A DNA stretch of 63,455 nt, filler included, from Intoshia linei (Eukaryota; Animalia; Orthonectida), in NCBI GenBank assembly GCA_001642005.1. It is 10 parts of 10 records of this genome, joined end to end, with 100 filler letters (N's around TTAATTAATTAA, not from the genome) between each part and the next. Parts side by side here need not be neighbours in the genome. Positions count along the whole stretch, not along the records: positions 25,549 to 45,581 come from LWCA01000695.1; 9 more parts are not named here. One strand, given 5' to 3'. The position numbers and the translations under genes are program-made. This document shows, in pieces, positions 28,283 through 47,322 of the stretch (positions are counted from its first letter, which is position 1; each line of letters begins with the position of its first letter). Below the pieces are notes generated by a model, which was not told where the DNA came from, made no database searches, and saw only the letters and a list, made by a program, of their open reading frames with translations.

Positions 28283-31200
28283 ATGGACAGCTTAAACATG
28301 CCAATAGTTGAAAAAGTCATGTCGGACAATGAAATAGATGTTGTAAACATTGATTTAAATGCCATGAATGGGTACATGAAACAAAATTCTGTAGAAAAAG
28401 AAAATTCAAAAGATCCAGAATCAAATGACGATAAAAGTGGGTCTGCTGATATTACAGACTGTGATATGATGATGTCTGGTACGTCTACTCTACAAGAAGA
28501 CAAGTTTTTCGATACTCTGGACGAAAAGCCTTCCAGTGTGACAAATAACGATTTTCCACTTAACCTTGTTTTAGTCAAACAGGAAAATATTAAAGGAAAT
28601 AGAATTTCAAATATTTGTGCTGGTAATTCACACTTTAATATTTTTAACGTCAAAACTTTTTTTAACATAGAATTAAGCAAAAATAGTTACAACGATTTGT
28701 ATGTACAATGTACATCAACTATTTTACATTGAAAATAAATTATAAACAGACCATATTTACTATACATTTTTCTGTTTTTATCGTACCAGTGTAACATATT
28801 CGTGTTAAACGATTCACTCAAACGTACAAACGGCTTTATTTTGATAGTATTAACTTACACTACTCAGTCATGTATACGTTTCAATCATTTATACGTTAAA
28901 ATTTCGTTCTTATTTGACAAATTAATCAATTTTAACAAACATAAAAATAGTACAGTTATATCTAATTACTATAATGTAAATTAACTAGCTAATTTTAACC
29001 TTTTCAACTAAATATTTGAATTATGATTAATATATCCAAAAAGTGACGAATAATTAAATTAATACCAAATATAATGTAATTATGACATGGATAAATACTT
29101 TTTTCTGTACAGTTGACCTATTTCTGTGGCAAGGTCAAAACTCAACCAAGTAAATTTATTAAATTATTAACCTTATTAAATTGCAAGTTTTATGCAGGTA
29201 TAATATTTTTAAATTACGGGACCTTTGTCATAAAATTCAGAGCTTTAGAAAAGGGCACGCAGAAATTTTCTAGACCATCGTCTGTCATTCTTTGCGGTGT
29301 TTACATTTTGTAAACTCTAAAAATAATGTTTGCGTTTATAAGAATTACTGATATAATTAGAATTTAACCTATGGTGTAGATTTTTTTATTAGAACAAATA
29401 ATTTTGCACATTAATGCCTTTTTCGTTTTAAAAATTTAAAAAAATTTTGAAATCTGTTCAATTATTACATGAGAGGAAAGATAAATAAATTAAGTTAATA
29501 CAAATAAGTAAACGTTAAATCAAAAATTAAAAAGTTCAAAATCTTATATCTTTTTGGCCAAAACTACAAATTACCCTTTTTTGAAAATGAAAATTTCAAT
29601 TCCAGAAAACATACGGTATACATTGAATTTTTACATCGTTAATTGCTGATTCCGTTTAATTTTGTTAGAATCTCAATAATAAAAATGATATTTTTGGTGA
29701 ACAGTAATAATGGAATAAATATGAATAAAGAGCCTAATTTTTTTATTCCATGGGTCTATTGGAATCAATTTAACCACCCCTATCGTATAGGTGATATTGA
29801 TTTATTATTCCTTTCTCAAATATAGATACATTTTGATGTAAAATAAAAAGTACGTGTGTTATTTCTTTTTTTTTATATTAAACATGCAAAAATGTTAGTA
29901 TTATAATAACGTATTTGATATATTTATCATAATTTTATTGACTTATCGATGAAATTAGTTTCAAACGAATGACGCAAAATTAATACGGATTAACAAACTA
30001 ATAATTATAGTTATGACACATAGCGATATTCTTTATATTTTGCATCTTTACAAATATTGAATTTGTTGATTTTGTTCCATGTTAATTATCAAATGTTTTA
30101 TTATTGTTGTGATTCCATTGTCTCATCGCTGTTGATTTTTCCAGTTTGTTGATAATTCGTTGGTTTTATGGAAATAAATAAACAAATTTTATTTACACTA
30201 TTAATAGTTTGATTGTCATTTACAATTACAATAATTTATGGGTAATTTTGAAAAATTTTAAATTTGTATGGTAATATATTAACATTTAGCTCTACCTGCA
30301 AATTCTAAAGAAGACACAAGACCTATTGAAACTAATTGCTTAAATGATGTGGATATTAAACCAAATGACATAAAACTTGAAATGAATAACGGTAAAAGAC
30401 ATAAAGAGATGGAAAATAACGTTGAAGATAAAAGAAGTAAATTCTTTAATTCTGTTCAAGAAATCAACCAATTTATGCACGCCCTCAGCAATTGTACACA
30501 GAATGGTAAATATGACGAGTTATTGAATAGTTTGAAAACTAATGGAGGTTTGATTTTTAATTTTTAAAAATATTAAAATTTTAAATTTTAGTGAAAAACA
30601 ACTCTGAAAATGACAAAGTTAAAGAGTATATTTACAAATTTGGAAAACTAGCTCAAAATTTTAGTGAGACTTCCCTTGATACAGAAAAAAATTTATCAGG
30701 TGTAGATAAAAACATAATGAAACAAAATAGTTACATAAACTCCACCATCAATCAAGGTAGAAGTCTTGAAAAAGAAGCAGAATTAAATGACAAACCTCAA
30801 CAAGATATATTATTGTACTTGAGAAATTTGCAAAATATGGATAAAAAGAAGAATATGAACGGAAATGATTGGAATGGAATCAAGGTTGATACTTTAAACC
30901 CCTTGTACCAAAAAGAAAAAAACACATCAAATTTAAACGACAAAAATGCATTTTTTGAATCTTTACAATCAAATAACCCAAATTCAAATTTGTCACAATT
31001 TCTCATGAACCTCCTACCAAATTATAATGCGTCCATGATTTCCAATATATCAAACAATTCTAATGTCTTTCAAAATACCACTCTCACAAAATCCCTTATC
31101 TATGCCAAAGTATTGGATTCACTCAAAATGCAATATGCGGGGATAGAAGAAAATGTTATACAAAATCAAAATATCCATGAAATGGCAGCACATTTAAAAG

Positions 31201-32229
31201 AGTTTATTAATCAAAAGTATTGTCAATGGCCAAATTGTAACACTCAATTTTACAGCTTGGATTCTAGCTTATCGTAATAATTTTTGTTTACTATTATTTA
31301 TTTTTGGATTTAGCCATATGTACTTGTCCCACAATTTTGATCAACAAAGTATTAAAAATCTGGCGGATCAGCGTAATAAAATCAATCAGTTGGAATTTCA
31401 GTTGCAAAAAGAAACTAAACTCTTTAATTTAATGAAAAGACATCTTGAATTTCTCAAAATTATTGAAGATCAGGCGAATTTTCAGGTTTTTTTGTAGTAA
31501 TTTCGTTTTTCATTTGATTAGAGCAATTATGACAAGGCCAATTTTGAAAAACCCAGTCAGTATGATTGGTTAACTAATAATCAGGAAAATCGACCAAAAC
31601 GCCAATTATCCAATTCTGCTCAACGTAGAGCCGGATTCATTAAATTCAAATTTACCGCACCCGATGTAAACCATAGAAAACACTATTTACATTCGGATGC
31701 ACGACCACCATTTACCTACGCTGCTCTAATTAGACAGGTTTAAATTATATTTCCTTCTTCATATTCATTTTCCATTTAGGCCATCATTGAAAGTTCAAGT
31801 TCTCAGCTGTCTCTAAATGATATATACACTTGGTTTGAGAAAAATTTTGTATTTTTTCAAAAAAATAGATCTACCTGGAAAGTAAGTTAAAACCAAACAG
31901 TTATTATATTATATACTTAGAATGCTGTAAGACACAATCTTAGTTTACATAAATGCTTTATTCGTGAAGAAAATGGTCGTGGTTCAGTCTGGACTGTAAA
32001 TGACACTGAATTTGATTCTCGTAAATCTCGAAGAGTTAGTCGATTTCTCAAACCATCTAATATGGTTTTAGGGAAAGAAGAAACCTTTATTAATGAACTA
32101 GAATCTGATTATCCGAACGATTTAATTGACATGATGGAACCTCTCGATTTACAAATGAAGGATAGCTCTATCCATTCAAATATCAAAGATGATGACATTT
32201 CAAGTCCGACCTTTAAAAATCCTTCATGA
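28283..32229 (+). CDS. FoxP: Forkhead box P transcription factor (7 exons)
   Basis: Exons 28283-28622 (least certain, phase-compatible), 30290-30547, 30592-31273, 31314-31485, 31522-31737, 31780-31881 and 31921-32229. C2H2 finger CQWPNC...HMYLSH, zipper [11 protein letters not shown]...MKRHL, forkhead [12 protein letters not shown]|AI...STWK|[13 protein letters not shown]. Confidence 0.95.
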
Positions 32230-33231: not shown

Positions 33232-36200
33232 ATGGGGACCAACGGAATAATAGAATCATTTGAATGTTATTTTTATGATCAAAACACAAAAGAAAACTTA
33301 ATGGAAGAGAAACATTTTCGTCGACGTCAACGATTGAACCGTTTGTTTTCGAGTAACATAAACACTAAAGAAAGTACAAAACAATCTATAAAAAATGCAC
33401 AAAAAAAAAAACAAATAAATGTATTGCAATCTTTAGATAGTACAGACGATAAACAGACATCCTTGGAATTGACAAGTAAAACGTCGACAGACATATCCCT
33501 AGAAAAACCTAGTGAACATTCTAGTAATGTCAATTCAATATTTCTTAATAATGAATATTTTCAAAATTTTCAAAGACTCAATTACTATCTGTTAAAGAAA
33601 GAGTCTTCGAGAATACTATTGATGTTAAACACTCAATTAATAATACTGGTTCCAAACGTAAAGTCAACCTGTTTCCATAAAAATTTTTTTAAAAATATAA
33701 ATTGGCCTAATGTGATAATTAGATATTTAAACTTTACAACTACACAATTAAAATCACAATCTAATCACTCTTACCGTACCTGGCAAACTTTATCATCGTA
33801 TACCTATTCCACACCGACTAAAAATTCTGAACCAGTGATTAACAAACACGACAAAAATTTAGAAATAAAAATAGATTTCAATCCCTACACTTCGCAAACA
33901 CCCGTTAAAGGGGTCAAACACAAAGACCTGAAAGATCAAAACGATGTCAAACTAGATGATTCTACTAAAACAATTAAAATTATCATGAATGGACCCACAT
34001 CAAATAAACAAATTTACCATGAAACTAACCGTTCCAGCAAAAACCCGGGTACATTTAAATATCATTTAATAATCCATTTTTATAGAAAGGAAAAGCTCAG
34101 TGTGCTCAAGTCGACTGAGCCGACATGAAAAATTCAGCAAAACTGTATATGATATTTCAGGGTACCATGCAGTTATCCAACTACAATTATCATCCCTCAA
34201 ATGTAAAGAAATGGGTTGGATTAATGAAAACGCGACGTCTCCAAAACTTGTAAATATTTACAGATGCGCGTTACACTATTTTGTAACCCTAATGAAAGTA
34301 AAAAATGATCGAGAGGCTATTAAGACAACTAGAAATGTAAACAATTTGAAATTATACAGTCGAAGCAGGTTGAATTCAGCAAAATCCCATCTATCTAGAA
34401 TAAAAAGTGCTCCAAGCGTATCAACTAAAGTCAATTTTTTAAAAATTGATAACTGGGTTAGAAATTTGAGTATATTTAGTTTTAATTTTCCGGATGGCTC
34501 CAATATACTCAGGTATCCAAATAAATTAATAGCTATTTTGCACATGAAAAAAATTATGATTATTTACGATATTGATGGAAAAATACTGGCACAGTATTTG
34601 TACAAGACTAACAATTTCATCGTTTATGATACTAAAAATGATGTGGATAAAAGTTTACTCTGTTTCAATAACAGTCGGAATATTAAGTTCCAATGCGATA
34701 AAACTGGTGTATGGAGTGTTGGTCGGAATGGAAAAAATATTACCTTTTTCAAATGGAGTCAATTTATAGTTTCATGTCAATTTGTCACCATCTCGGTAAT
34801 ACATTCAAAAAATTAAATACAGTATTCTCTCTCCAATTCGACATTTTTCTCAAAAGAGGGGTGACCCTAGATTTTTTTAAAACTTGAAAAAATTTAAGTT
34901 TTAAAACAACTTTAAAGTATAATTTGTAAACGTTCATATAATATAGTAGAATCATGGAGTCGTCAAACTTTTTTCGTCATAAACCCTCATTTTTAATATA
35001 AAATTAATTTATATATATTAAATATTAAAATTAAAGTGTCCACTTTTTTAATGTCTAAAATTTAAAAAAGCACAATTTCTAATAAAGATTTGCGAAAATG
35101 TTGCATTGACGAAATTGAGTCCTTCTAAGTTAAAAACCCTTTTCTTTTTTTTAAGTTATCAAATAAAAAAATGAATACCAAAGTGTTTTTGACTGTGAAA
35201 GCGTCACCTTGTTGGTTTAAAATTTTTTGTGTGTGTTAACTGGATACAATCGTATCATCAGTAATTTTTTTTAAATTCTAGGGCTGTTTTCATTTTTAAA
35301 AAAAAGGGTAAGATGTGGTTTTTATCATGAAAATATAGGTTTCTGAGGCTGAAATTTATAAAATGTTAATGCTTTTAAAACGCCTCCAAGAATTGATGTT
35401 TTTTGAATATTTAGGGTTGATTTTAGTTTTAAAAAAGGGCAAATTAGGTTTTTTACCCTGAAAGACTCAATTTGAAAACTGTATTAGAAATCGGGGTTTT
35501 TAAATTGTACGATGTAAATTATTTAAATAAACAGTAATTTTATATACGAATTAAAATTTGCGTTTTATTACACAACATTTTGCAAATTAATACTAAAAAA
35601 ATAGTGAATAATTAAAAAATAACGAATAAAAAAATAAAATAATTTTAGACCATTTTGTTTCGTTTTATAGAGAAAAAAATCTAACTCAGAAATTTGCGTC
35701 CGGTCAAAAACACAATTAAAATTTTATTTATTATAATATTAAAAAAAATAATAATTATGTTAATTGATCTAAAAGTACAACTAAGAATTGTAAATATTGA
35801 TGACAGAGCCAAATCTACCTACCGAGACACCTTTTAGGGGGACTTTAACGAAAGTTTTGACTATCTTTACTATTTTCTGTGTTAAATTTAAAATGTCAAA
35901 ACCATATCCGCAAAGTTTTGTGGCAAAACACAATTTTGTTAAAATAAACATTATTTAATAGGGAGTCCGTAGATTTTTAATTTTAACTCTTTGAGAGTCC
36001 ATCGCATGTATTCCCCTTATTTAGATTAACGTTAATAACATTTAAATAATATTAAGGATATTATTAAAAACCTTATAACCTAGCTCAACAAATGGCTAAC
36101 ACTTCGAATAAAGTCAAGTGTTAATATTGAATTAATTTTCAATTGTGACTACGAGAATTATTGTATAAATATAACGGATCCCTGTGAAATAACTTATACA

Positions 36201-37960
36201 CTGCAAAAAGAAAATGAAATGGATGAATTTTCTTACAAATGCGCAAATTATGATAAAAAGGGTCAAAGTGCTCCAAATAAAAGGTTACCTAATAAAGATA
36301 ACAATAAACAATTTTTGGACATTAATAAACCAGCTTTATTTTGTAACATCAAGTATACATCGAGAACTGCTAGAAAAATAATTCAAAACATGAAAAGTAA
36401 AAATAGGGACAAAAGTTCCATTAAATATGCCAAGACTAACTTGGTTTGTCATATAATGTATTGATATTCATACTATTTTAGCAATCGCAATCTTTAGCCC
36501 ATAAAAACAGTATACTTGTTACAATGAATCAAAAATTAAGGTAAATCCTTGTAACTTTGTTACTAATTAAGTATATACGTTATACTGTACAATAGCCATT
36601 GTTTCAGTTTTGAACGGATGGCCACTGGCCTCAATTCTAAAACATAATAATAAAAATACATGTAATGAATGTATAATACAGAACCAGGAAGCTAGGGGTC
36701 TACAACCGTAAATCTGACTAAATATTTTCTTGATACATTTCGTAATCGTCTTAAATTCTTTACTTTATTCTGATTAATATAAAAATAAAATAAAAATGCC
36801 ATATTTTTTAACCATTTCTAATATTCATGTTATTTTGAAACTACTGGTAGAGTAAATATTCATTTATTTTAAATTACAATTTGGAACAGGTCAAAGCACG
36901 ACACGACTCAAAATATATTGATTATTCAATTAAATTTTTAGATTCCTGGCAGATAAATGGTTACAGTTTTACCGAAAAAAACTAAAAATTATTAAAACGT
37001 CATTAGAAAAAATCCAAGGTATCAAAGATATAACCATTTTATAAATATATTTAGTTAAACAAACATTACCTAGTGTATCATTTAGGTATCTTTTATTTTA
37101 CACATTTTTATATACAAAAAAATATATACATTTAATGTATATTTTATAATTAAAAATATTAAATTTAAGACGTGAACATGATTTAAATGCATATTACCTA
37201 AAAAGATTAAAATCACTGAAAAGAGATACATTTATTTGCCCTGAAAATCTGCGTAGGGCAGTCTATTCTACAATATCATTGAGTAAAGACTTCGATAAAA
37301 ATAAATGTTTTTGTTCCGTCAAAGAAATCACCCATCTCTCTGATTTTGAATTAAAGTATTACATAGACTCTTCAAAAGTTACTCAACAACTGCTGATTCT
37401 CATTATAATTGCTAGCGGGTATAAAATAAAATTGAAAATATAATATCCCATTAGTTCAGTATACGACAAAACTGGATACAACACTATGCTAAACCTTTAC
37501 GGAAAGATGCAAAAAGATCGAGTACACGTGTGCAAGGAATCTGAAAACGATAAATATCGTTTATTTTTATATGACATTGATCAAGATTACTTTAAAAGGG
37601 TGTATAATTGCAGTGTTCATCCAATGACAAACATTCCGTCTTCCATTTTAAAAGATCGACACAACATAAAACCCGGAATGTTCATGGTATATTAAAAATT
37701 TTAATTTATAATCTGCACATCTACACTGTATAATAATCTTAGATTTACAAAAATGGAGTATTATTATTTTGTAATTATATATTTGATGGATACGGTAAAA
37801 CTATTCGTCATTTTAACAATCAGGTGACAAAATTGGCTGATCTATCCCAAACAGGGTTTTATATTCCGAATGATTTTCAATTTAGGTAAACGTTTTGAAA
37901 ATAAGTTTAATTTTCAATTGTAGTTCGAACGAAAGACTGACATCAAATTTTAATAAATAA
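33232..37960 (+). CDS. FAM194-domain protein, C3orf20-like; middle exons tentative
   Basis: A 37-nt intron (34049-34085) fuses ORFs 33232 and 34100. FPDGSNILRYPNKLIAI...FFKWSQ resembles FAM194. Later exons read CPENLRRA...CFCSVKEITHLSDFEL, YRLFLYDI, HNIKPGMFM|IYKNGVLLFCNYIFDGYG and GFYIPNDFQFS, matching the recalled C3orf20 C-terminus. Stop at 37958-37960. Confidence 0.75.
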
Positions 37961-37985: not shown

Positions 37986-40900
37986 TTAATTAGTATACTG
38001 CTGTATATATTCTTCTGATGAGGGAATGTTGATTATTCCAAAACACCGTTTGCATAGATTCGTGTTTTTTTGACGTTTATAGTTTCTGCATCTCTCGCAT
38101 AATTTTGTCGACGTTTCGCGAATAATTAAGTTACCATGCTCTAAATAATATAATAATATGGTCTACCAATTAAACTTACCCAGTTCAATACTATCGCTTT
38201 TCTGCAAAGTTTCATCTAAAGGAATTTCTAAAGATTGATTCAGACTTTTTATTGTTAAATTGAATGAATTGCATTGAAATAAATCGGTTATATCTGAAGC
38301 GTGGTTATTTACAATATCCTATACATTTTTGATTATTAATGGATTTAAAATTTACCTGTAATTGTTGACTTTCATTGTTAGTAGTGTATATTAAATCAAA
38401 TTTCTTTGGTCGTTTTGTTTGAATGTGAAGGTAGAAAGATTTTCGGATTTTTAAGAGTGTTTGGATTTCTTTGTTGTCTTCAAGTTTGACCCTATTATTT
38501 TTACTTTTTAAGCCTTTGTCATAAATTGGGTTTAATAAAAATGAACACTTCTTTTTTCCTATATTATTATAAAAAAAATAAATAAAAATTACCCAGTATC
38601 TTGTTCAAATTTGAATTAATTTCTTCGGCGAGATAGGGTAAAACAGGAGATGTCAAAATGGTTAATTTTTTTAGTATGTAAATCAATGTCAACTTGGTAG
38701 AGTGCAAACGATCTGAATCATCATCATCGCAATATAATCTGCAAATTTAATATACTACGAAAAGTGAAACGACTACATAATCAAAAATAAAATCATTAGT
38801 CAAACGCAAATAAACACACAATTGGTAAAATAAAAATTTAATATTCACAATTAGGGTGCATTAATCTTGTTGGAAACTTTAATAAGAATTTCTGAGGGAT
38901 CCAATAACCAATTTTTAATATTTTTCATTACTTGGCACCACATTTCGCCGTGATGAGGTTCAGCTTTAATGCAACAATTTTTTACGTATGCTTGTTTCTC
39001 AGAATCGCCATTGATCAGTTCAAATTTATAAAAATGACACCACGAATCACCATTGTCTCCATCAACTTTGATTGCTCTATGGAACCATTCTCGCGCTTTG
39101 TTAATTTTACGATCCTGCCAAAACATTCTTGCGGCAGCGACTAAAACTTGCGGATCGTGTTCACATCTTCTGAGTGCATCGATACACCTAGCTTTCGACT
39201 GAGCTCTAGTTTCAACTTCAATAGTTTTCGCCCATAGAATTCCAGAATTCGGACACTCCTGGAGAGCTTTAGATAGTAAAATTTTAGCAACGGCCATATT
39301 TTCAATGCTGATTTCTATCCTTATAGACTCTAGCCACAATCGATCAGTTTTTGGATTTGCTAAGCGGCTACGCTCTAAAATAGATCTACCTTTTGGAATT
39401 CGGTTCAGTCTACACTCGAACCTACTTGCCAATATCCACAAATCTATTGACCTAGGACATTTTTTAATTGATTTTGCAAATAATTCAGGTATTTCATCAA
39501 ATTTTTTTTGTTGTTCCTTTATTTGTGTTAAAATCATCCATAATTTAGGCTCAGATGAGAAAGTTCGCATTGCATCATTGACAAGTTTTAACGCCTCGTC
39601 AATGTTATCAAGACACCACTCTAATTTGGCAGATTTAATGTAAACTCTAGCGGTAGGTGCTTTGGCTCTAGCACTAGTCAATAATTTCCTAGCTCTATCG
39701 TGGTCATTGTTTTCACTCTCCAATTTCACTGCCGCTAGCCATATTTTTTCATTATAAGGGTTATATTCAAAAGCAGCCTTTAGTACGTCTCTAGCCATAT
39801 CTACTTTACCCCGTAGCCACAATTCTTTTGCTCTCATCAACCAAAGCAAATCGGCTTTCGGACAAATTTTTACGGCTCTTTCTAAAACATTGTCAAAACT
39901 TTCACTTGTTCCGTAATTTTTTTCAAAATAAGCCAAAGCTTGCCATATGGATTTTTTTTTCGGCATCTTTGTTACCATATGTTCATAAACTTCACGCGCA
40001 CATTCTAAACAATTGTGAGATATGAAAGACTCTGCATCATCCATCCAAATTGATTTTCTATCTTCTTTGTCAACGTCAATATCTATTACACACTGCACAA
40101 TTTGTTTTGCTGTCAATATACTTTTAGCGGTTTCACACAATTCTGCTTCTTTGAGCCAATCGTCTCGTTTTATTTCCACGCTATTTGCACGTAACATTGT
40201 CAATCCTCTTTCTAATAACATTTTAATCATGGCTATATTATCATTTGATTCTTCTAATTGAGCAGCCGCGATCCAGATGATCCTTTCAGTGGGAATGCTT
40301 TGACGAGATTTATTCAAAACTTGACGCGCATTTTCATATGATTCAAGCTTAGCAAGAGCTAACCATAAATCTACACTAGTAGGACAGCATTCAACGGCTC
40401 TAGTTAACATGATTCTTGCATCTTCTTTTTCTTCCAATTCTACGGCTAATTTCCAAAGTCTAACAGAATTAGGTATGTATTCGAGGGCTTTTCTGTATAC
40501 ATTTTTTTTATTATTCAAACTGTCTTCTAATTCTGCCGATTTAACCCAAATTTTCACAGAATTGCTGAGGTTTCTAATCGACAAGGCAATTATACTTTTA
40601 GCTTCTTCCCTAGACAATAATCTCACTGCTTCAAGAATCATATCTTCACTGTGGGGACATTTTTCAATTCCTTTCAATACATAATTTTTAGCAGTTTGTA
40701 GTTTACCAGTAACTTCTTCAACTCGGGCAGATGCTATCCAACCCGGTGCATGATTTGGATTAGTTTCTCTGACAGATTTCAACAACAATCGAGCCTTTTT
40801 CACGTCGTTAATATCACCACCTTGGTTAGGATTCATAGATTGAAGGTCTGTCAGGTATCCTTTAGGGTCAACTACAGTTTGACCCGTAACAGAATCGCTA

Positions 40901-43900
40901 ACTTGATTTAATCGAATATCCATAAGTGTGTTTCGAGCTTCACCAATTTTTTTCATGTCAATATCAGCAACAGGTGTGGAAAGACCGCCCGTAAATGGAG
41001 TTGTAATTCCGCCAAATTTTTGTTCTCTCGAAGAAACTGCCATGGAATTTTCAGTGGCAGTCACAGCACTGCGCAAAATACTGTCTGGCACTGGAGTAAA
41101 TTTTTCCATTCTGGGGTTCCTTTGTCGCTTATTTCTCGTATCACCTACTTCTGGAATACTCATCCAGTCATCTTCAGAAAGTTCTCCCAGTGGTCTTTTT
41201 AAATCAGAAAATTGTTGCTGAATTTTGGGTCGTTCTTTGTGATAAATTTCTAACAATTTCTTACGTTTAAATTCTCTACGTTGTTTACGTTTTTCGTCCA
41301 TTCTACGATCAATCGAATCATATACTTCATCTGCTTCAACGTCATCTTTTTCATAGGGATCATTACTGCACAAACTTCCACCATATCCTGCAAATTCGTC
41401 AAAATATGCATCGTTCAAATCTTGTGTTCCATCATCCTTAGGCGACGATCCAGCTTGCGGTATATCAATAGCTGCTCGAGCGGGCCCAATATCTGATCTA
41501 GTCGTAAATCCTGATGCGCCACGGCCTATTCCAGGTACATAGCCCGGCGGTGCATCCTGTGTCATAAATAGACGATTCTTTCTGTTATCAATCGACATTT
41601 AGAAATTTATATTTTTCTATTAAATAAAATTAACTTCATTGTATATATTTTTCATAATTGTTGTTAACAATATTATACAATAGAATGTCCCACTTTTTTT
41701 TATAGAAAAAGTATACCCCGGCAATGTTTCCCATTTACCTCAAGGGTATTATATATAAATTTGTAAATCATAATATTAAGGTTTGGTCAGGCGCGGACCG
41801 AATGAAATTTTAATAATAAATCAGAATGAACATAAAGTTATTTATGAATATTACCTGAATTACTATTCATGCTTTTTATAAAATGGATATTACTAAGCGT
41901 ATCAAAATAAATTTAGATTAAATATATAATTTACAAAATCACATATCGAACCTCTATACTTGCTTTCACTGGAAATTCAGAATATTTGTAAATTTATAAA
42001 ATTACTATTTATTACTTATATAATAAAATTCTATAAACAACAAAAGGATTCGAATAAATAACCAAGATTTTAATTTTTCTGTTTTAAAATTAATTGCACC
42101 TCATACAGATGACTTACATGATAAAGATTATAAATACGGTCAAGTTGATGTTATATCAGTAAAAAAAGCCGATATGGCATCCATTATTACAAATACCTCT
42201 ATTTGAAAAATCAATTCAATGCTAAAAATGTCCAACAATGAATCAAATAAAGGTTCAAACCAAGTAAAAGTTCACTATTTTATAATATAAACAAAATTTT
42301 AAAAACCGTTAAAAAAACTTTAATAAATAATGTATCTTCGTTTATCCAGAACTTATGTTTACATTTTGACGGAAAAAGAATAATTAGATATGACGGCCAT
42401 AAAACTGAGAAACTGGCTGTTTGTATTTCTGGAGAAAATTATTCAATACTCATTGCTTTACGGTCATTAAATAATAGTAAGGGTCTTACAATATACCAAT
42501 AAATTCTAAATGTCTTGAAGTTATTTACATTATTGTTAATATTAATGATAAAATATCAATGATGATTTGCGACACAAGAAGCTCCAACACCGGTATTCAC
42601 CAGGGTGTAATAACTTATTTGAAACAGATTTTGCCAGAGTTTACATACGAAGGTTGTCGGTTTCATATATTAGACCTTATACTTAAACATGTTTTTTATA
42701 CTGTTTTTCAAGTTAATACAAATTCGTCCAATATTCCATTTTCATTTGTAACAAAACTTAAAGAAAATTTTATTATAAAATCTAAATATATCGGAGAAAT
42801 TAATATAGAACGCAATGCTAATTTACAGGGAAATTGGCGTAATGACTACAAAGAATTATCTGAACTAATAGACGCTTATAAAACTAATAAAATACCAAAA
42901 AGTCCAATTATCAAACTTAAATAGCCGAGTGCATTTCTAATTCTCGTTGGAATGCAAAAGCATTGAAATCATACATCTTAAATGTGGATAGAGCACCAAA
43001 GATGAATCAAATCTGTGATTTTATAGCAAATGTTTGGTTTACATGCAGATTTCAAACATTTGAAGAATGGGGTTCCTTAGAAGCAGAATTGCTATTAAAT
43101 TATCCAACGGTAGCTAAATGTTTGAACAAGCATTGGCTTCGCAAAAACACTTTGAGCGGAAGGCTAAAAATTTCGTACTCAAACGAAATAGCAGAACGGG
43201 CTTTAAAATGCATGGATGACTATTTCATTTGATGAAAAATTGGAACAAATGTATATAAAAAAATTAAAAATTATAATTAAAATATTTAAAATAAACTTTT
43301 ATCTAATTATACGACTATAAAAATACATTATTTTTTTGAAAATAAAATTTTCGTACTTCGCCTGACCAAATTAAGATTAAATTATAAATTAAAAGCGACA
43401 TCTTACATTGTATACAAAATGGGACATATATTCAAAAATACTTTTTGAATTTCAAACAAAAATGTTAAATTGGGACACTCTATTATACAAGTACATTTTT
43501 GGTTAGTTATCTAATTTTAGTATTAACTATTTAATTTCAGTGGTTCTTAAACTTAGATCCACAGATTCGTTATTTCAATAAAAAATTTTGATAAAAAACG
43601 TAATAAACTGAATTTAAACTACATGTAGTAGTCGAATGTAGCAAAAATTTACTAAGTAAAACCATTACTGGTTAGCAAACCGCATTTGGGAAACGCTGGA
43701 CTAAAGATTTAATAATAGCAAAAAGTGAAAAGACCAATGTGTGATACTTAAGGAAATTTTGCATTATCTGTAAAAAGTGTACCATGAATCAGAGCTGACC
43801 ACACATGTTCGACGCCCACGCAAAAATTAACAATATACCTAAAAGTTTTTGCAAACGACGTGTAATACCATATAGCCCGAGGGACACAAAATAATTGTAT

Positions 43901-45215
43901 GGTCAAAAATAAATAATATACACGGTATAATTAAAAATGTATGTGTTTAAGTTTAAAAAAAAAAGAAAAACAACCAAAAATTAAATAATAAATTAAATTA
44001 ATTATTATTATATTTTTAAGTTAAGGTTTAAACTAAATTTGTATAATATTTACCTATCTTTAATGGCAGTGAAATAAATTGCAGAGAGATCATTGGTAAT
44101 GAAATAATCAATAGCGTTCAAACCTTGGTCGTACTTAAAGTTATGATAATAATTCCAGACTTGATTGTAGGTTTCGTCCATCGAACATTTTATATAATCA
44201 TCTAGAAATCCAATCTTAGATTTTTCATTTTTCTGACGATCTATTAATTATACTTTTATTCATACTTATCAATAAAATGTTTATCAAACTTTAAAATTAA
44301 TAGACAGTGTATGTATAAACTCAAATATGAATTTACAGGTCAGTTACAAATATTTTTATTTTTTTGTATTGCAAACCAAAAATTATATTCTCAAAGTATC
44401 AAGTGTTATACACTGTGTAACCATTTATTTAGAAAACTGACAGCCCTATACATTTCAAAAATAAAAATTAGTAGTCCATTTTTTTCTGCCTCTGAAAGTA
44501 AGATACATTTAAACTTCAAAAATTGACATCTTCACGACCAAAAACCCAAATTATTCTTTTCTTTCTCAACCTGTAAATCTTTTATACATATACACTTTCA
44601 TTATACCAGTGGTTCACATTTCAAATAGTATAAGGACCCCATTTCAAAATATTTATTTTTTTTGAGCCATAAAGGAAACATAAAATATAAAACATTAAAA
44701 AAATTAAAAGTTTTTTTCTCATTAGATTTGGTAAAATTGTGTTTTTCAAAAAAATATTGGATAAATAAGATTTTTCCGTAAAGGGTTGGTAAAATTGGAT
44801 TTTGAAAAATAATATTGGAAAAAGGGGATTTTTTATTTCTAATTTGGTAAAATTGAATTTTTCCCTGAGGGTTTGAAATGGTATTTTTTATTTAATTGGT
44901 TTAATGGTGGGATAAAATTTGGATTTTTGTAAATAATAATGTAGCTGTCATCTATGCTTTGTGATAAATTACCAACATCTGGCAACTCTGTAATAAATAT
45001 TAAAAATTCTCCTATAAAAATAAACAAAAGTTGATAAAATTTTATTTGAATCTCACGGACCTCCAGGCAGTTTTGTATCACTAGTTTTGTATACCAAGAG
45101 GTCCAGGGACCCCAATCTGGAACCACTGCATTACAAGTACAACTGTATAATATAAAACAAAATAAAACGTACGCTTGTTTAAATTTCCGATTATAAATTT
45201 AACAGAGTTTCTAAT
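37986..45215 (-). CDS. IARS2: Mitochondrial isoleucyl-tRNA synthetase, last 6 exons (anticodon-binding domain and Zn finger); 5' part not found before the 45582 linker
   Basis: Exons 45215-45173, 44240-44054, 38738-38593, 38558-38356, 38318-38180 and 38140-37986 splice in frame: [26 protein letters not shown]|[22 protein letters not shown]...LCKRC. These are bacterial/mitochondrial-type IleRS motifs. Confidence 0.9.
38851..41598 (-). CDS. PRPF6: Pre-mRNA processing factor 6 (U5-102K), intronless, 915 aa, nested in an IARS2 intron
   Basis: [62 protein letters not shown] repeats and a C-terminal AEPHHGEMW. The ORF is open and full length. Confidence 0.98.
41681..43482 (+). mobile_element. hATm-like DNA transposon with a decayed transposase, inside the IARS2 intron
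   Basis: TIRs TAGAATGTCCCA / TGGGACACTCTA and perfect 8-bp TSD TTATACAA (41673-41680 and 43483-43490). Transposase motifs [31 protein letters not shown] and [10 protein letters not shown], interrupted by stops. Confidence 0.88.
44607..45128. mobile_element. hAT-type MITE with an internal ~30-bp repeat array, in an IARS2 intron
   Basis: CAGTGGTTC...GAACCACTG ends. Flanks CATTATAC / CATTACAA match 6/8. Internal TTGGTAAAATTG repeats. Confidence 0.7.
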
Positions 45216-46439
45216 CTAAATAAAATGATGCACAAATTTAGACTAACAGACCGGTTGCATTATTATGTAATGCACCAGACAAAATTAATATCATTAGAAA
45301 GAATTTTGATACTTTAAGAATGAGCTACACCCATGGCCGTGAAGACCCAGCAATAGGCCCGGTCAGATGACAATTATAAGGCCTATAAATTTTTTTTAAA
45401 TTGAGATGTCTATATAATGTTTAACCCATTGCAACATTGACATAAAAATGATGTTTTAATGTGCTTTTTTATAAATGTTATAGTTACGTATATTTTATAT
45501 TTCACTGACAAATCGTATTATTTATTATTAATTAATTACTTAATTAATTGTAATTTAAATTTTAATCAATCAAAATTATACNNNNNNNNNNNNNNNNNNN
45601 NNNNNNNNNNNNNNNNNNNNNNNNNTTAATTAATTAANNNNNNNNNNNNNNNNNNNNNNNNNNNNNNNNNNNNNNNNNNNNTGGTTTTTGTTAGATATAT
45701 TAAATCTAATACATTTAAGGAAGAATTTTTGTTCTATAGTGAGCTCTAAACCCATACAAAAATTATAGATATTTTTAAAAATGTTTAAATGAAACTCAAT
45801 TTAAGTCTTAAATAATAATATTAATTTTGGCGGACTATCAATTGATCGTAAAAATATACTAATACAATTATGTAATACATATATTAAAATTTACAATTTA
45901 ATTAGATAAAAAATATTCTCTGGTGTGAATACCATATGGTATCTTAATATTCCAGTTTTAACTTGGGTCTGTTGATCTACGATCATTTGAAAGGACACGA
46001 TAATGATGAATGTTGAATAAATTCAAGAGCTATTAAGTTTAAATATGACAATTTTTACGGATTAATAAATAATATTAATACGCATTAACGTTTTTTAATA
46101 AGCTACGCGTATGTCTATTACTGAAATGTCCTCCAACGAATATTGTTTGAAAGGAAAAAAGCATGTTTTCATAATAGTTTCACATGAAATATGTTAAAAC
46201 AGGACTTAATATTATTGGAAAAACGAGAATTAAACATAAATTAAAAATTTTTTTCAATGATTAAAGAATTGCTGCCAGAAGAGAATCGAATAAACGTACC
46301 AATTTTGTAGAAAAACTACTAAATATATTTGACTGTACAAAATCAGATCTATTAAACATTTAAATTTAAGTAAAAAATGGGGATTAGGTATATGACTGAA
46401 CCATCCATATTTTTCAATTATTTTGATTAAAATAAAAAT

Positions 46440-47141
46440 ATTGATGCTACAATTTCAAAAAAAAATGTGCATGAACGTATATACATTTCCAATAAAGAAA
46501 TATGTGAAAATCTATATAATTCATTCCTTCAAAATTTTTAAATTATTTTCAAAACTTTTGGTATAAAATTTAAATTATAACACTACAGCAACGAATTTAT
46601 AAAAGTTCAATTTTGATACTTATAAACGTGCTATTTTTTTAATTATAATTGTTTCAATTAACATAAAATGGAAAAGTGAAATTCAGAAGCAAACAGGCCA
46701 TAAAGGTGAAGAATGGACGTCTCAATGATTCATGATATTGAAAATGACCAAATAGGTTTTTTTAATTTTATTTTTTCTGGAATTTATGACAATTTGACTC
46801 TTACTTTATTTTTAATATTATACACATTCAGTCTAATTAAAAAAATGGGATAAAAATTATTTTTAAAATTCTTTACGCAAATGTTAACAAAAAAATTAAG
46901 ATGGAATGATTCACTTTAAAGTAAAAAGTAATGATATAATGGTTCCACCTGAAAAAAATTTGGGAACTATCCTTTAAAGGATTGATAATAGTGAATAGTA
47001 AGATTTTTTACGTTAGATACATTAATTATTGATTAAGATTGGTTAGATTTTCAACGTGAATGAATTTTTCTGGTGGAATAAAAACGTGGTCTCGGCAGAG
47101 CTAGGTGCTGTTTGTAAGTAGTACATCACAGTCAACCTAGT
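46440..47141 (+). repeat. Dispersed repeat, possibly a non-autonomous Helitron; relatives at ~1600-1750 (-), 24716-25010 (-), 53500-53790 and 60880-61100
   Basis: Shared blocks TACTTTATTTTTAA(T/G)ATTATACAC, TGTTAACAAAA and GATTGATAATAGT. This copy ends with a GC-rich stretch followed by CTAGT. Confidence 0.5.
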
Positions 47142-47322
47142 AAGAATATAAAACGATTAAAGCAGTATACTGATTAATTCTGAGAATAAAATTATAAATA
47201 TTTATTTTAAAATGATAGCGATATTTATATTTTAACAAATACAATATGTATGCTAGAATCAAGATTTAACAGATACTATTTTTATGCAATAAATAATGCA
47301 ATTATATACAGATACAAAAGAT

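Follow-up and report, generated by a model that had tools for sequence, protein, structure and literature searches.

The DNA analysed here (the window) is a stretch of 63,455 nucleotides (nt), filler included, from the orthonectid Intoshia linei. This report concerns one sequence within it, LWCA01000695.1 of assembly GCA_001642005.1, which is 20,033 bp long and occupies positions 25549-45581 of the window. This contig has a G+C content of about 25% and is without any N. On its minus strand, a complete and intronless gene for PRPF6 lies inside one intron of a gene for isoleucyl-tRNA synthetase (IleRS), taken here as the bacterial-type (mitochondrial) IleRS gene, IARS2. All positions given below are those of the window.

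Anatomy of IARS2 and PRPF6

The two genes are made up of the following features, listed in the direction of transcription with the evidence for each. Complementary DNA (cDNA) refers to the assembled transcript contigs described in the next section, and ORF to an open reading frame.

44054-44240, minus strand: IARS2 exon A, anticodon-binding domain (Anticodon_1, E 7e-5; ileS TIGR00392 positions 690-745; cDNA with 0 mismatches)
38739-44053, minus strand: host intron of 5,315 nt, GTAAAT...TTGCAG (joint in all three transcript runs; no N)
38851-41598, minus strand: PRPF6 coding sequence, 915 codons plus TAA, intronless (ORF, domains, alignment, colinear cDNA)
38741-38850, minus strand: spacer of 110 nt separating the stop codon of PRPF6 from the IARS2 acceptor AG (free of cDNA contigs)
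38593-38738, minus strand: IARS2 exon B, (R)LYCDDDD... (Anticodon_1, E 7e-6; ileS positions 747-791; cDNA)
38356-38558, minus strand: IARS2 exon C (cDNA joints giving flanking introns of 34 nt and 37 nt)
38180-38318, minus strand: IARS2 exon D (upstream joint in cDNA; downstream 39-nt GT-AG intron predicted from the frame)
37986-38140, minus strand: last IARS2 exon, CxxC...CxxC and TAA stop (weak zf-FPG_IleRS match, E 0.012; open frame)

On the minus strand, the host intron has its donor GT at 44053-44052 and its acceptor AG at 38740-38739. It splits the IleRS motif KD(R)|LYC. Exon A ends with ...TAIKD followed by AG, and exon B starts with A followed by TTA TAT TGC, which together read R-L-Y-C. 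The two exons match adjacent parts of the Pfam domain Anticodon_1 (positions 3-49 for exon A and 52-87 for exon B), and they are also adjacent on the best-matching model, ileS of NCBIfam (E 3e-5 and 2e-5, respectively). Profile searches were run exon by exon, and the frame continuity of the joined model was counted with a local script. The chain of five exons is open for 275 residues and then reaches TAA, with GT-AG introns of 5315, 34, 37 and 39 nt, so that the last 830 nt of IARS2 carry four introns. When single exons were searched against solved structures, exon A gave a marginal match to an IleRS of 920 residues, while exon B gave no match. The Pfam match of the last exon to zf-FPG_IleRS is below the cut-off of that family.

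Mitochondrial-type IleRS proteins, which bear the zinc peptide, have about 1,000 residues, and those of the cytosolic type about 1,260. The IARS2 cDNA contig has room for at most about 960 codons. By cDNA, the 5' edge of exon A is at 44240, and the acceptor AG that precedes it lies at 44242-44241. In the 1.3 kb upstream (44243-45581) a three-frame view revealed no IleRS-like reading frame, and we take this sequence as intron; this upstream intron is longer than 1.3 kb and runs off the contig. It contains three tandem units of 29 nt (TTTTTC...GGTAAAATTG) at 44713-44828.

The PRPF6 ORF contains the PRP1_N domain (E 4e-49) and HAT/TPR repeats, including HAT_PRP39_N. This matches the architecture of PRPF6/Prp6 proteins, in which PRP1_N lies at the N terminus and is followed by HAT/TPR repeats, over a length of about 930 residues. 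It is 55-60% identical to animal PRPF6 proteins over 100% of its length, and its closest relatives outside I. linei, at this same level of identity, are those of molluscs, a brachiopod and annelids. Residues that are invariant among eight animals are retained from F11 to L905. At the local base composition, a run of 915 codons free of stops has a P of about 5e-32. The protein database contained no second PRPF6 relative with an identity between 100% and 60%, so the present copy seems to be the working gene. By orthology, the protein would be expected to take part in assembly of the tri-snRNP (small nuclear ribonucleoprotein).

A sequence-only reading of this locus had proposed both a 5.3-kb GT-AG intron (44053-38739) that splits the IARS2 motif and a complete PRPF6 ORF of 915 residues on the same minus strand within it. 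The first proposal is borne out by the sequence, the IleRS models and the cDNA, and the second by the ORF, its domains, the alignment and the cDNA. The same reading placed everything within one gap-free contig. That holds for the intron and for PRPF6, which are without N, but not for the host gene as a whole, most of which (about 2 kb of mRNA, the 5' two thirds) lies upstream of the contig. The regions expected to encode the catalytic HIGH/KMSKS domain, the editing domain and the mitochondrial presequence belong to that upstream part.

Transcripts of the two genes

The transcript data come from one study, as assembled contigs of three public runs whose library type is not on record; they were placed on positions 38261-44260 of the window. 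In all three runs the contigs behave as cDNA, in that spliced joints are present and the intron has no matching coverage. Contigs of this kind show that a form exists; starts, ends, strand, amounts and rare isoforms are beyond their reach.

The junction of 44054 with 38738 that the sequence-only reading had predicted was found, exact to the base, in transcript contigs of each of the three runs. This joint skips 5315 nt and is bounded on the plus strand by CT..AC, which corresponds to GT..AG on the minus strand. The contigs bearing it (5670, 2905 and 5506 nt) align with 0 mismatches, also carry the downstream introns of 34 and 37 nt, and reach 1886-2055 nt upstream of exon A, off this contig. 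An extension of this length is what the catalytic portion, two thirds of the protein, would need in an IleRS with about 960 residues, indicating that the copy present here is the expressed gene.

PRPF6 is found as a separate contig in each run, colinear with the genome and without joints, extending from 38854 to 41620, 41639 or 41645. These contigs start 22-47 nt upstream of the ATG. Their 5' ends vary, but those of all three runs stop at 38854, the last base before the TAA, and they are not joined to IARS2 exons. No transcript contig from the three runs lies on 43661-44053 or on 38739-38853, and the depth recorded in the bin 38661-38860 is fully explained by exon B together with 7 nt of PRPF6. 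Chimeric and intron-retaining contigs were likewise absent from the three runs, as were contigs in which exon A is linked with the intron or with PRPF6. The contigs show that both genes are expressed and that PRPF6 behaves like an independent transcription unit.

Two motif matches could serve as the signals of this unit.

41699-41704, minus strand: TATAAA, candidate PRPF6 core promoter (hexamer scan; the cDNA contigs begin 54-84 nt downstream of it)
38878-38883, minus strand: ATTAAA, candidate poly(A) signal (inside the final codons of PRPF6; the contigs end 24 nt further downstream, at 38854)

The simplest reading of the common end of the contigs is that PRPF6 transcripts are cleaved and polyadenylated at the stop codon or a few bases from it, with a 3' untranslated region (UTR) of near-zero length. 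The same observation could equally arise if a polymorphism preceded a 3' UTR that is very short and had its ends clipped by the assembler. A scan for bacterial-type promoters 5' of PRPF6, which is not applicable to an animal gene, gave a chance-level score.

The public record calls only three genes on the contig, namely PRPF6, a FAM194-domain gene and a FOXP-type forkhead gene, and misses the five IARS2 exons. Its PRPF6 model has 896 residues and a range of 41598-38738. One structure fits this model exactly: the ORF is cut after the TG at 38909, a 170-nt "intron" runs from the GT at 38908 to the IARS2 acceptor AG at 38739, and an exon of 1 nt (A, 38738) completes a TGA stop. We considered whether a real splice from PRPF6 to IARS2 lies behind this model and rejected it, as the PRPF6 contigs are colinear through 38909, although a rare isoform is possible. 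The 896-residue model looks like a prediction artefact.

The host intron, its surroundings and other animals

The median intron of I. linei is reported to be 57 bp, and its intron density resembles that of dicyemids, at 4.9-5.3 per gene (PMC6543705). The host intron is about 90 times this median, and its size can be attributed to its having received a gene and a transposon that may be of hAT type. The latter forms a second insert upstream of PRPF6.

41673-43490, plus strand: decayed, repeated DNA element bearing terminal inverted repeats of 24 nt and the frame-shifted remains of a transposase that may be hAT-like (inverted repeats, cDNA, homologues)

The inverted repeats, at 41673-41696 and 43467-43490, are 83% complementary, and the motif recurs in subterminal positions. 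The cDNA contigs that align to the element are numerous, short and mismatched, with loose ends at 41717 and 43482; the element is present in multiple copies, and diverged copies of it are transcribed. A plus-strand ORF within it (42559-42921) has 98 homologues. Homologues of the element are uncharacterised animal proteins of 500-614 residues. The predicted fold of a 614-residue homologue is nearest to the RNase-like folds of hAT, ZBED and FAM200 proteins (TM about 0.5), whereas neither the plus-strand ORFs of the intron nor the homologues of 500-614 residues gave any domain match in Pfam. We treat the hAT affinity as a lead only. One terminus of the element, located 75 nt 5' of the PRPF6 ATG, contains the TATAAA that possibly serves PRPF6. 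Scans of the contig with Rfam (E up to 0.1) and for tRNAs gave zero matches, and thus no known RNA gene in the intron.

According to the public record, the plus strand of the contig carries the FOXP-type forkhead gene (FOXP-CC and Forkhead domains) at 28738-32229 and the FAM194-domain gene, encoding 904 residues, at 33232-37960. The latter converges with IARS2, the stop codon of which (37988-37986, minus strand) is overlapped by an ATTAAA at 37990-37985 on the same strand; 25 nt separate the two stops. cDNA contigs of 5.5-5.7 kb in two of the runs appear to span both IARS2 and the FAM194-domain gene, in which case their 3' ends overlap in antisense.

In four other animals the arrangement is different. 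By tblastn, PRPF6 of Capitella consists of at least about 14 coding pieces (at least about 13 introns) over 4.4 kb, and that of Owenia of about 24 coding pieces (about 23 introns) over 42 kb. The PRPF6 genes of Adineta and Drosophila are longer than their coding sequences, that is, they contain introns. In none of these four animals does an IleRS gene lie within 10 kb of PRPF6. The 42-kb gene of Owenia fusiformis has two features of its own. One of its introns hosts an antisense gene for a transporter of the SNF family (L003, 19992-29020), and at 45231-47185 it contains about 20 tandem copies of a coding-like unit of 20 residues.

Origin and meaning of the nesting

The entire PRPF6 ORF is contained in one intron of IARS2 on the same strand, and the host mRNA is spliced across it. 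We consider it likely, with a probability of roughly 85%, that the two genes truly form a nested pair on one strand of a very compact and AT-rich genome, with PRPF6 as an independent unit and the pairing an accident. The anatomy, the splicing across PRPF6 and the separate expression of the two genes are the firm part of this reading. What we infer from them is where PRPF6 has its promoter and its poly(A) site, that it began as a retrocopy, and that the two genes are not coupled.

In this reading, IARS2 is transcribed through the whole of the 5.3-kb intron, which is then removed precisely. PRPF6 transcripts would begin roughly 25-50 nt or more 5' of the ATG, with the TATA at 41704 as their probable promoter. 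Their 3' end would fall on the stop codon or very close to it, some 110 nt short of the host 3' splice site, and cleavage there would leave the branch site and the acceptor of the host free. The polymerase transcribing the host would have to read through the PRPF6 poly(A) site. That the host pre-mRNA must read through PRPF6 had already been proposed from the sequence; it is a structural reading, and it is backed by the sequence and by the cDNA contigs. Since no contig links exon A to the intron, read-through followed by splicing seems to be the rule. A transcript initiated at IARS2 and ended at the PRPF6 poly(A) site would carry the PRPF6 ORF far downstream of the IARS2 frame, and with ordinary cap-dependent scanning no PRPF6 product would be expected from it.

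Several points weigh against this reading. The 5' two thirds of IARS2 lie off the contig, and all of the transcript support consists of assembled contigs of one study. In addition, there is no run of A after the PRPF6 stop and no convincing direct repeat or target-site duplication flanking the ORF.

If the two genes were coupled, cleavage at the PRPF6 3' end and removal of the host intron would be mutually exclusive on any RNA initiated at IARS2, and the supply of PRPF6, through the tri-snRNP, would set the amount of full-length IARS2 mRNA. The layout lends itself to such an idea, with only 110 nt between the PRPF6 stop and the host acceptor, an ATTAAA 24 nt before the common contig end, and matching strands; moreover, human genes provide documented cases of nested units that interfere with transcription or cause cryptic polyadenylation (PMC3192792). 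However, no contig joins exon A to the intron or to PRPF6, and the depth in the intron beside exon A is zero. The absence of the arrangement from the four other animals shows that it is not a conserved device, and every intron depends on PRPF6 equally, so that the host intron is not special in this respect. We regard such coupling as very unlikely. A more specific form of it, in which PRPF6 termination at the stop codon competes with removal of the IARS2 intron and IleRS output depends on the splicing factor encoded in its own intron, is most improbable. The sequence-only reading had gone further and suggested a feedback loop from spliceosome capacity to mitochondrial translation. For this we found no support: the contigs show no shared transcript, the arrangement is not conserved in the four animals, and PRPF6 is needed at all introns. 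The loop is speculation.

The locus could also have been misassembled. A chimera formed through the repeated hAT-like element would mean that exon A is not truly 5.3 kb upstream of PRPF6, and the multiple copies of the element at 41673-43490, the divergent cDNA contigs on it and the loose ends at its borders speak for this possibility. The contig, on the other hand, is without N, and an error of this kind would change only the length and content of the intron upstream of 41673. In the unique sequence of 38593-41672 the PRPF6 stop still lies 110 nt 5' of the exon B acceptor, and exons A and B are joined in the mRNA. PRPF6 is therefore in the intron between A and B, whatever the length of that intron. 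We judge an assembly artefact very improbable. It is also conceivable that the IARS2 sequence seen here is a dead or partial duplicate and that the working gene is elsewhere, as only the last 275 codons are on the contig and the public annotation calls no gene there. This is extremely unlikely, however, because exons A-C match cDNA with 0 mismatches, the contigs add about 2 kb upstream for a total of about 960 codons, the frame is open, and the small introns are canonical.

Returning to the accidental nested pair, PRPF6 would have arrived at its present place, or lost all of its introns, by way of reverse transcription, the resulting copy being now the sole functional PRPF6. An intronless coding sequence of 2.7 kb at a lineage-specific place points to such a copy, whereas neither a poly(A) remnant nor a target-site duplication was found to confirm retroposition. 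We put the odds of a retrocopy origin at about even. The pairing of IARS2 with PRPF6 is most likely an accident of insertion and not a regulatory device.

Nested genes are common in animals. The arrangement is similar to that of other animal host and nested pairs (PMC11694760, PMC3192792) in that a complete gene occupies one unusually long intron, the nested gene is intronless, and both are on the same strand, as in about one third to one half of pairs. In human, single-exon genes account for about 41% of nested genes, and about 63% of nested genes are oriented opposite to their host (PMC3192792). The two orientations were called "broadly similar" in a survey of mouse and human from 2024, which reported a slight opposite-strand bias and a preference for long host introns (PMC11694760). 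The statement of the sequence-only reading that nested genes are mostly antisense to their hosts is thus overstated. Unlike animal nested pairs in general, the present pair is found in an extremely compact genome, where the neighbouring introns have 34-39 nt and the host intron is an extreme outlier, and both partners are essential housekeeping genes.

Orphan retrogenes, which replace their parent gene, offer a second likeness, being intronless copies of a multi-intron gene at a new place in an intron of another gene, with apparently no other copy. PRPF6 differs from them in having no poly(A) tract or target-site duplication, and in-place loss of introns followed by relocation is also possible. 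A same-strand promoter and poly(A) signal in an intron that is read through are features shared with units that cause intronic polyadenylation or interference (PMC3192792). In contrast to such units, no prematurely ended or intron-retaining host transcript was found among the contigs here. Intronless genes that lie in a long intron on the strand of their host are already a known kind of arrangement; it is the setting, with its compactness, its essential partners and an intron some 90 times the median, that is unusual.

The value of the locus lies in the correction of the annotation and in a clean example of a nested gene, and it opens no long-standing question. It shows that the insertion of a whole gene and of a transposon has been tolerated in an intron of an essential gene, in a genome in which introns are typically a few tens of bases long. 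That PRPF6 seems to have next to no 3' UTR is a hint of how closely units of this kind may be packed.

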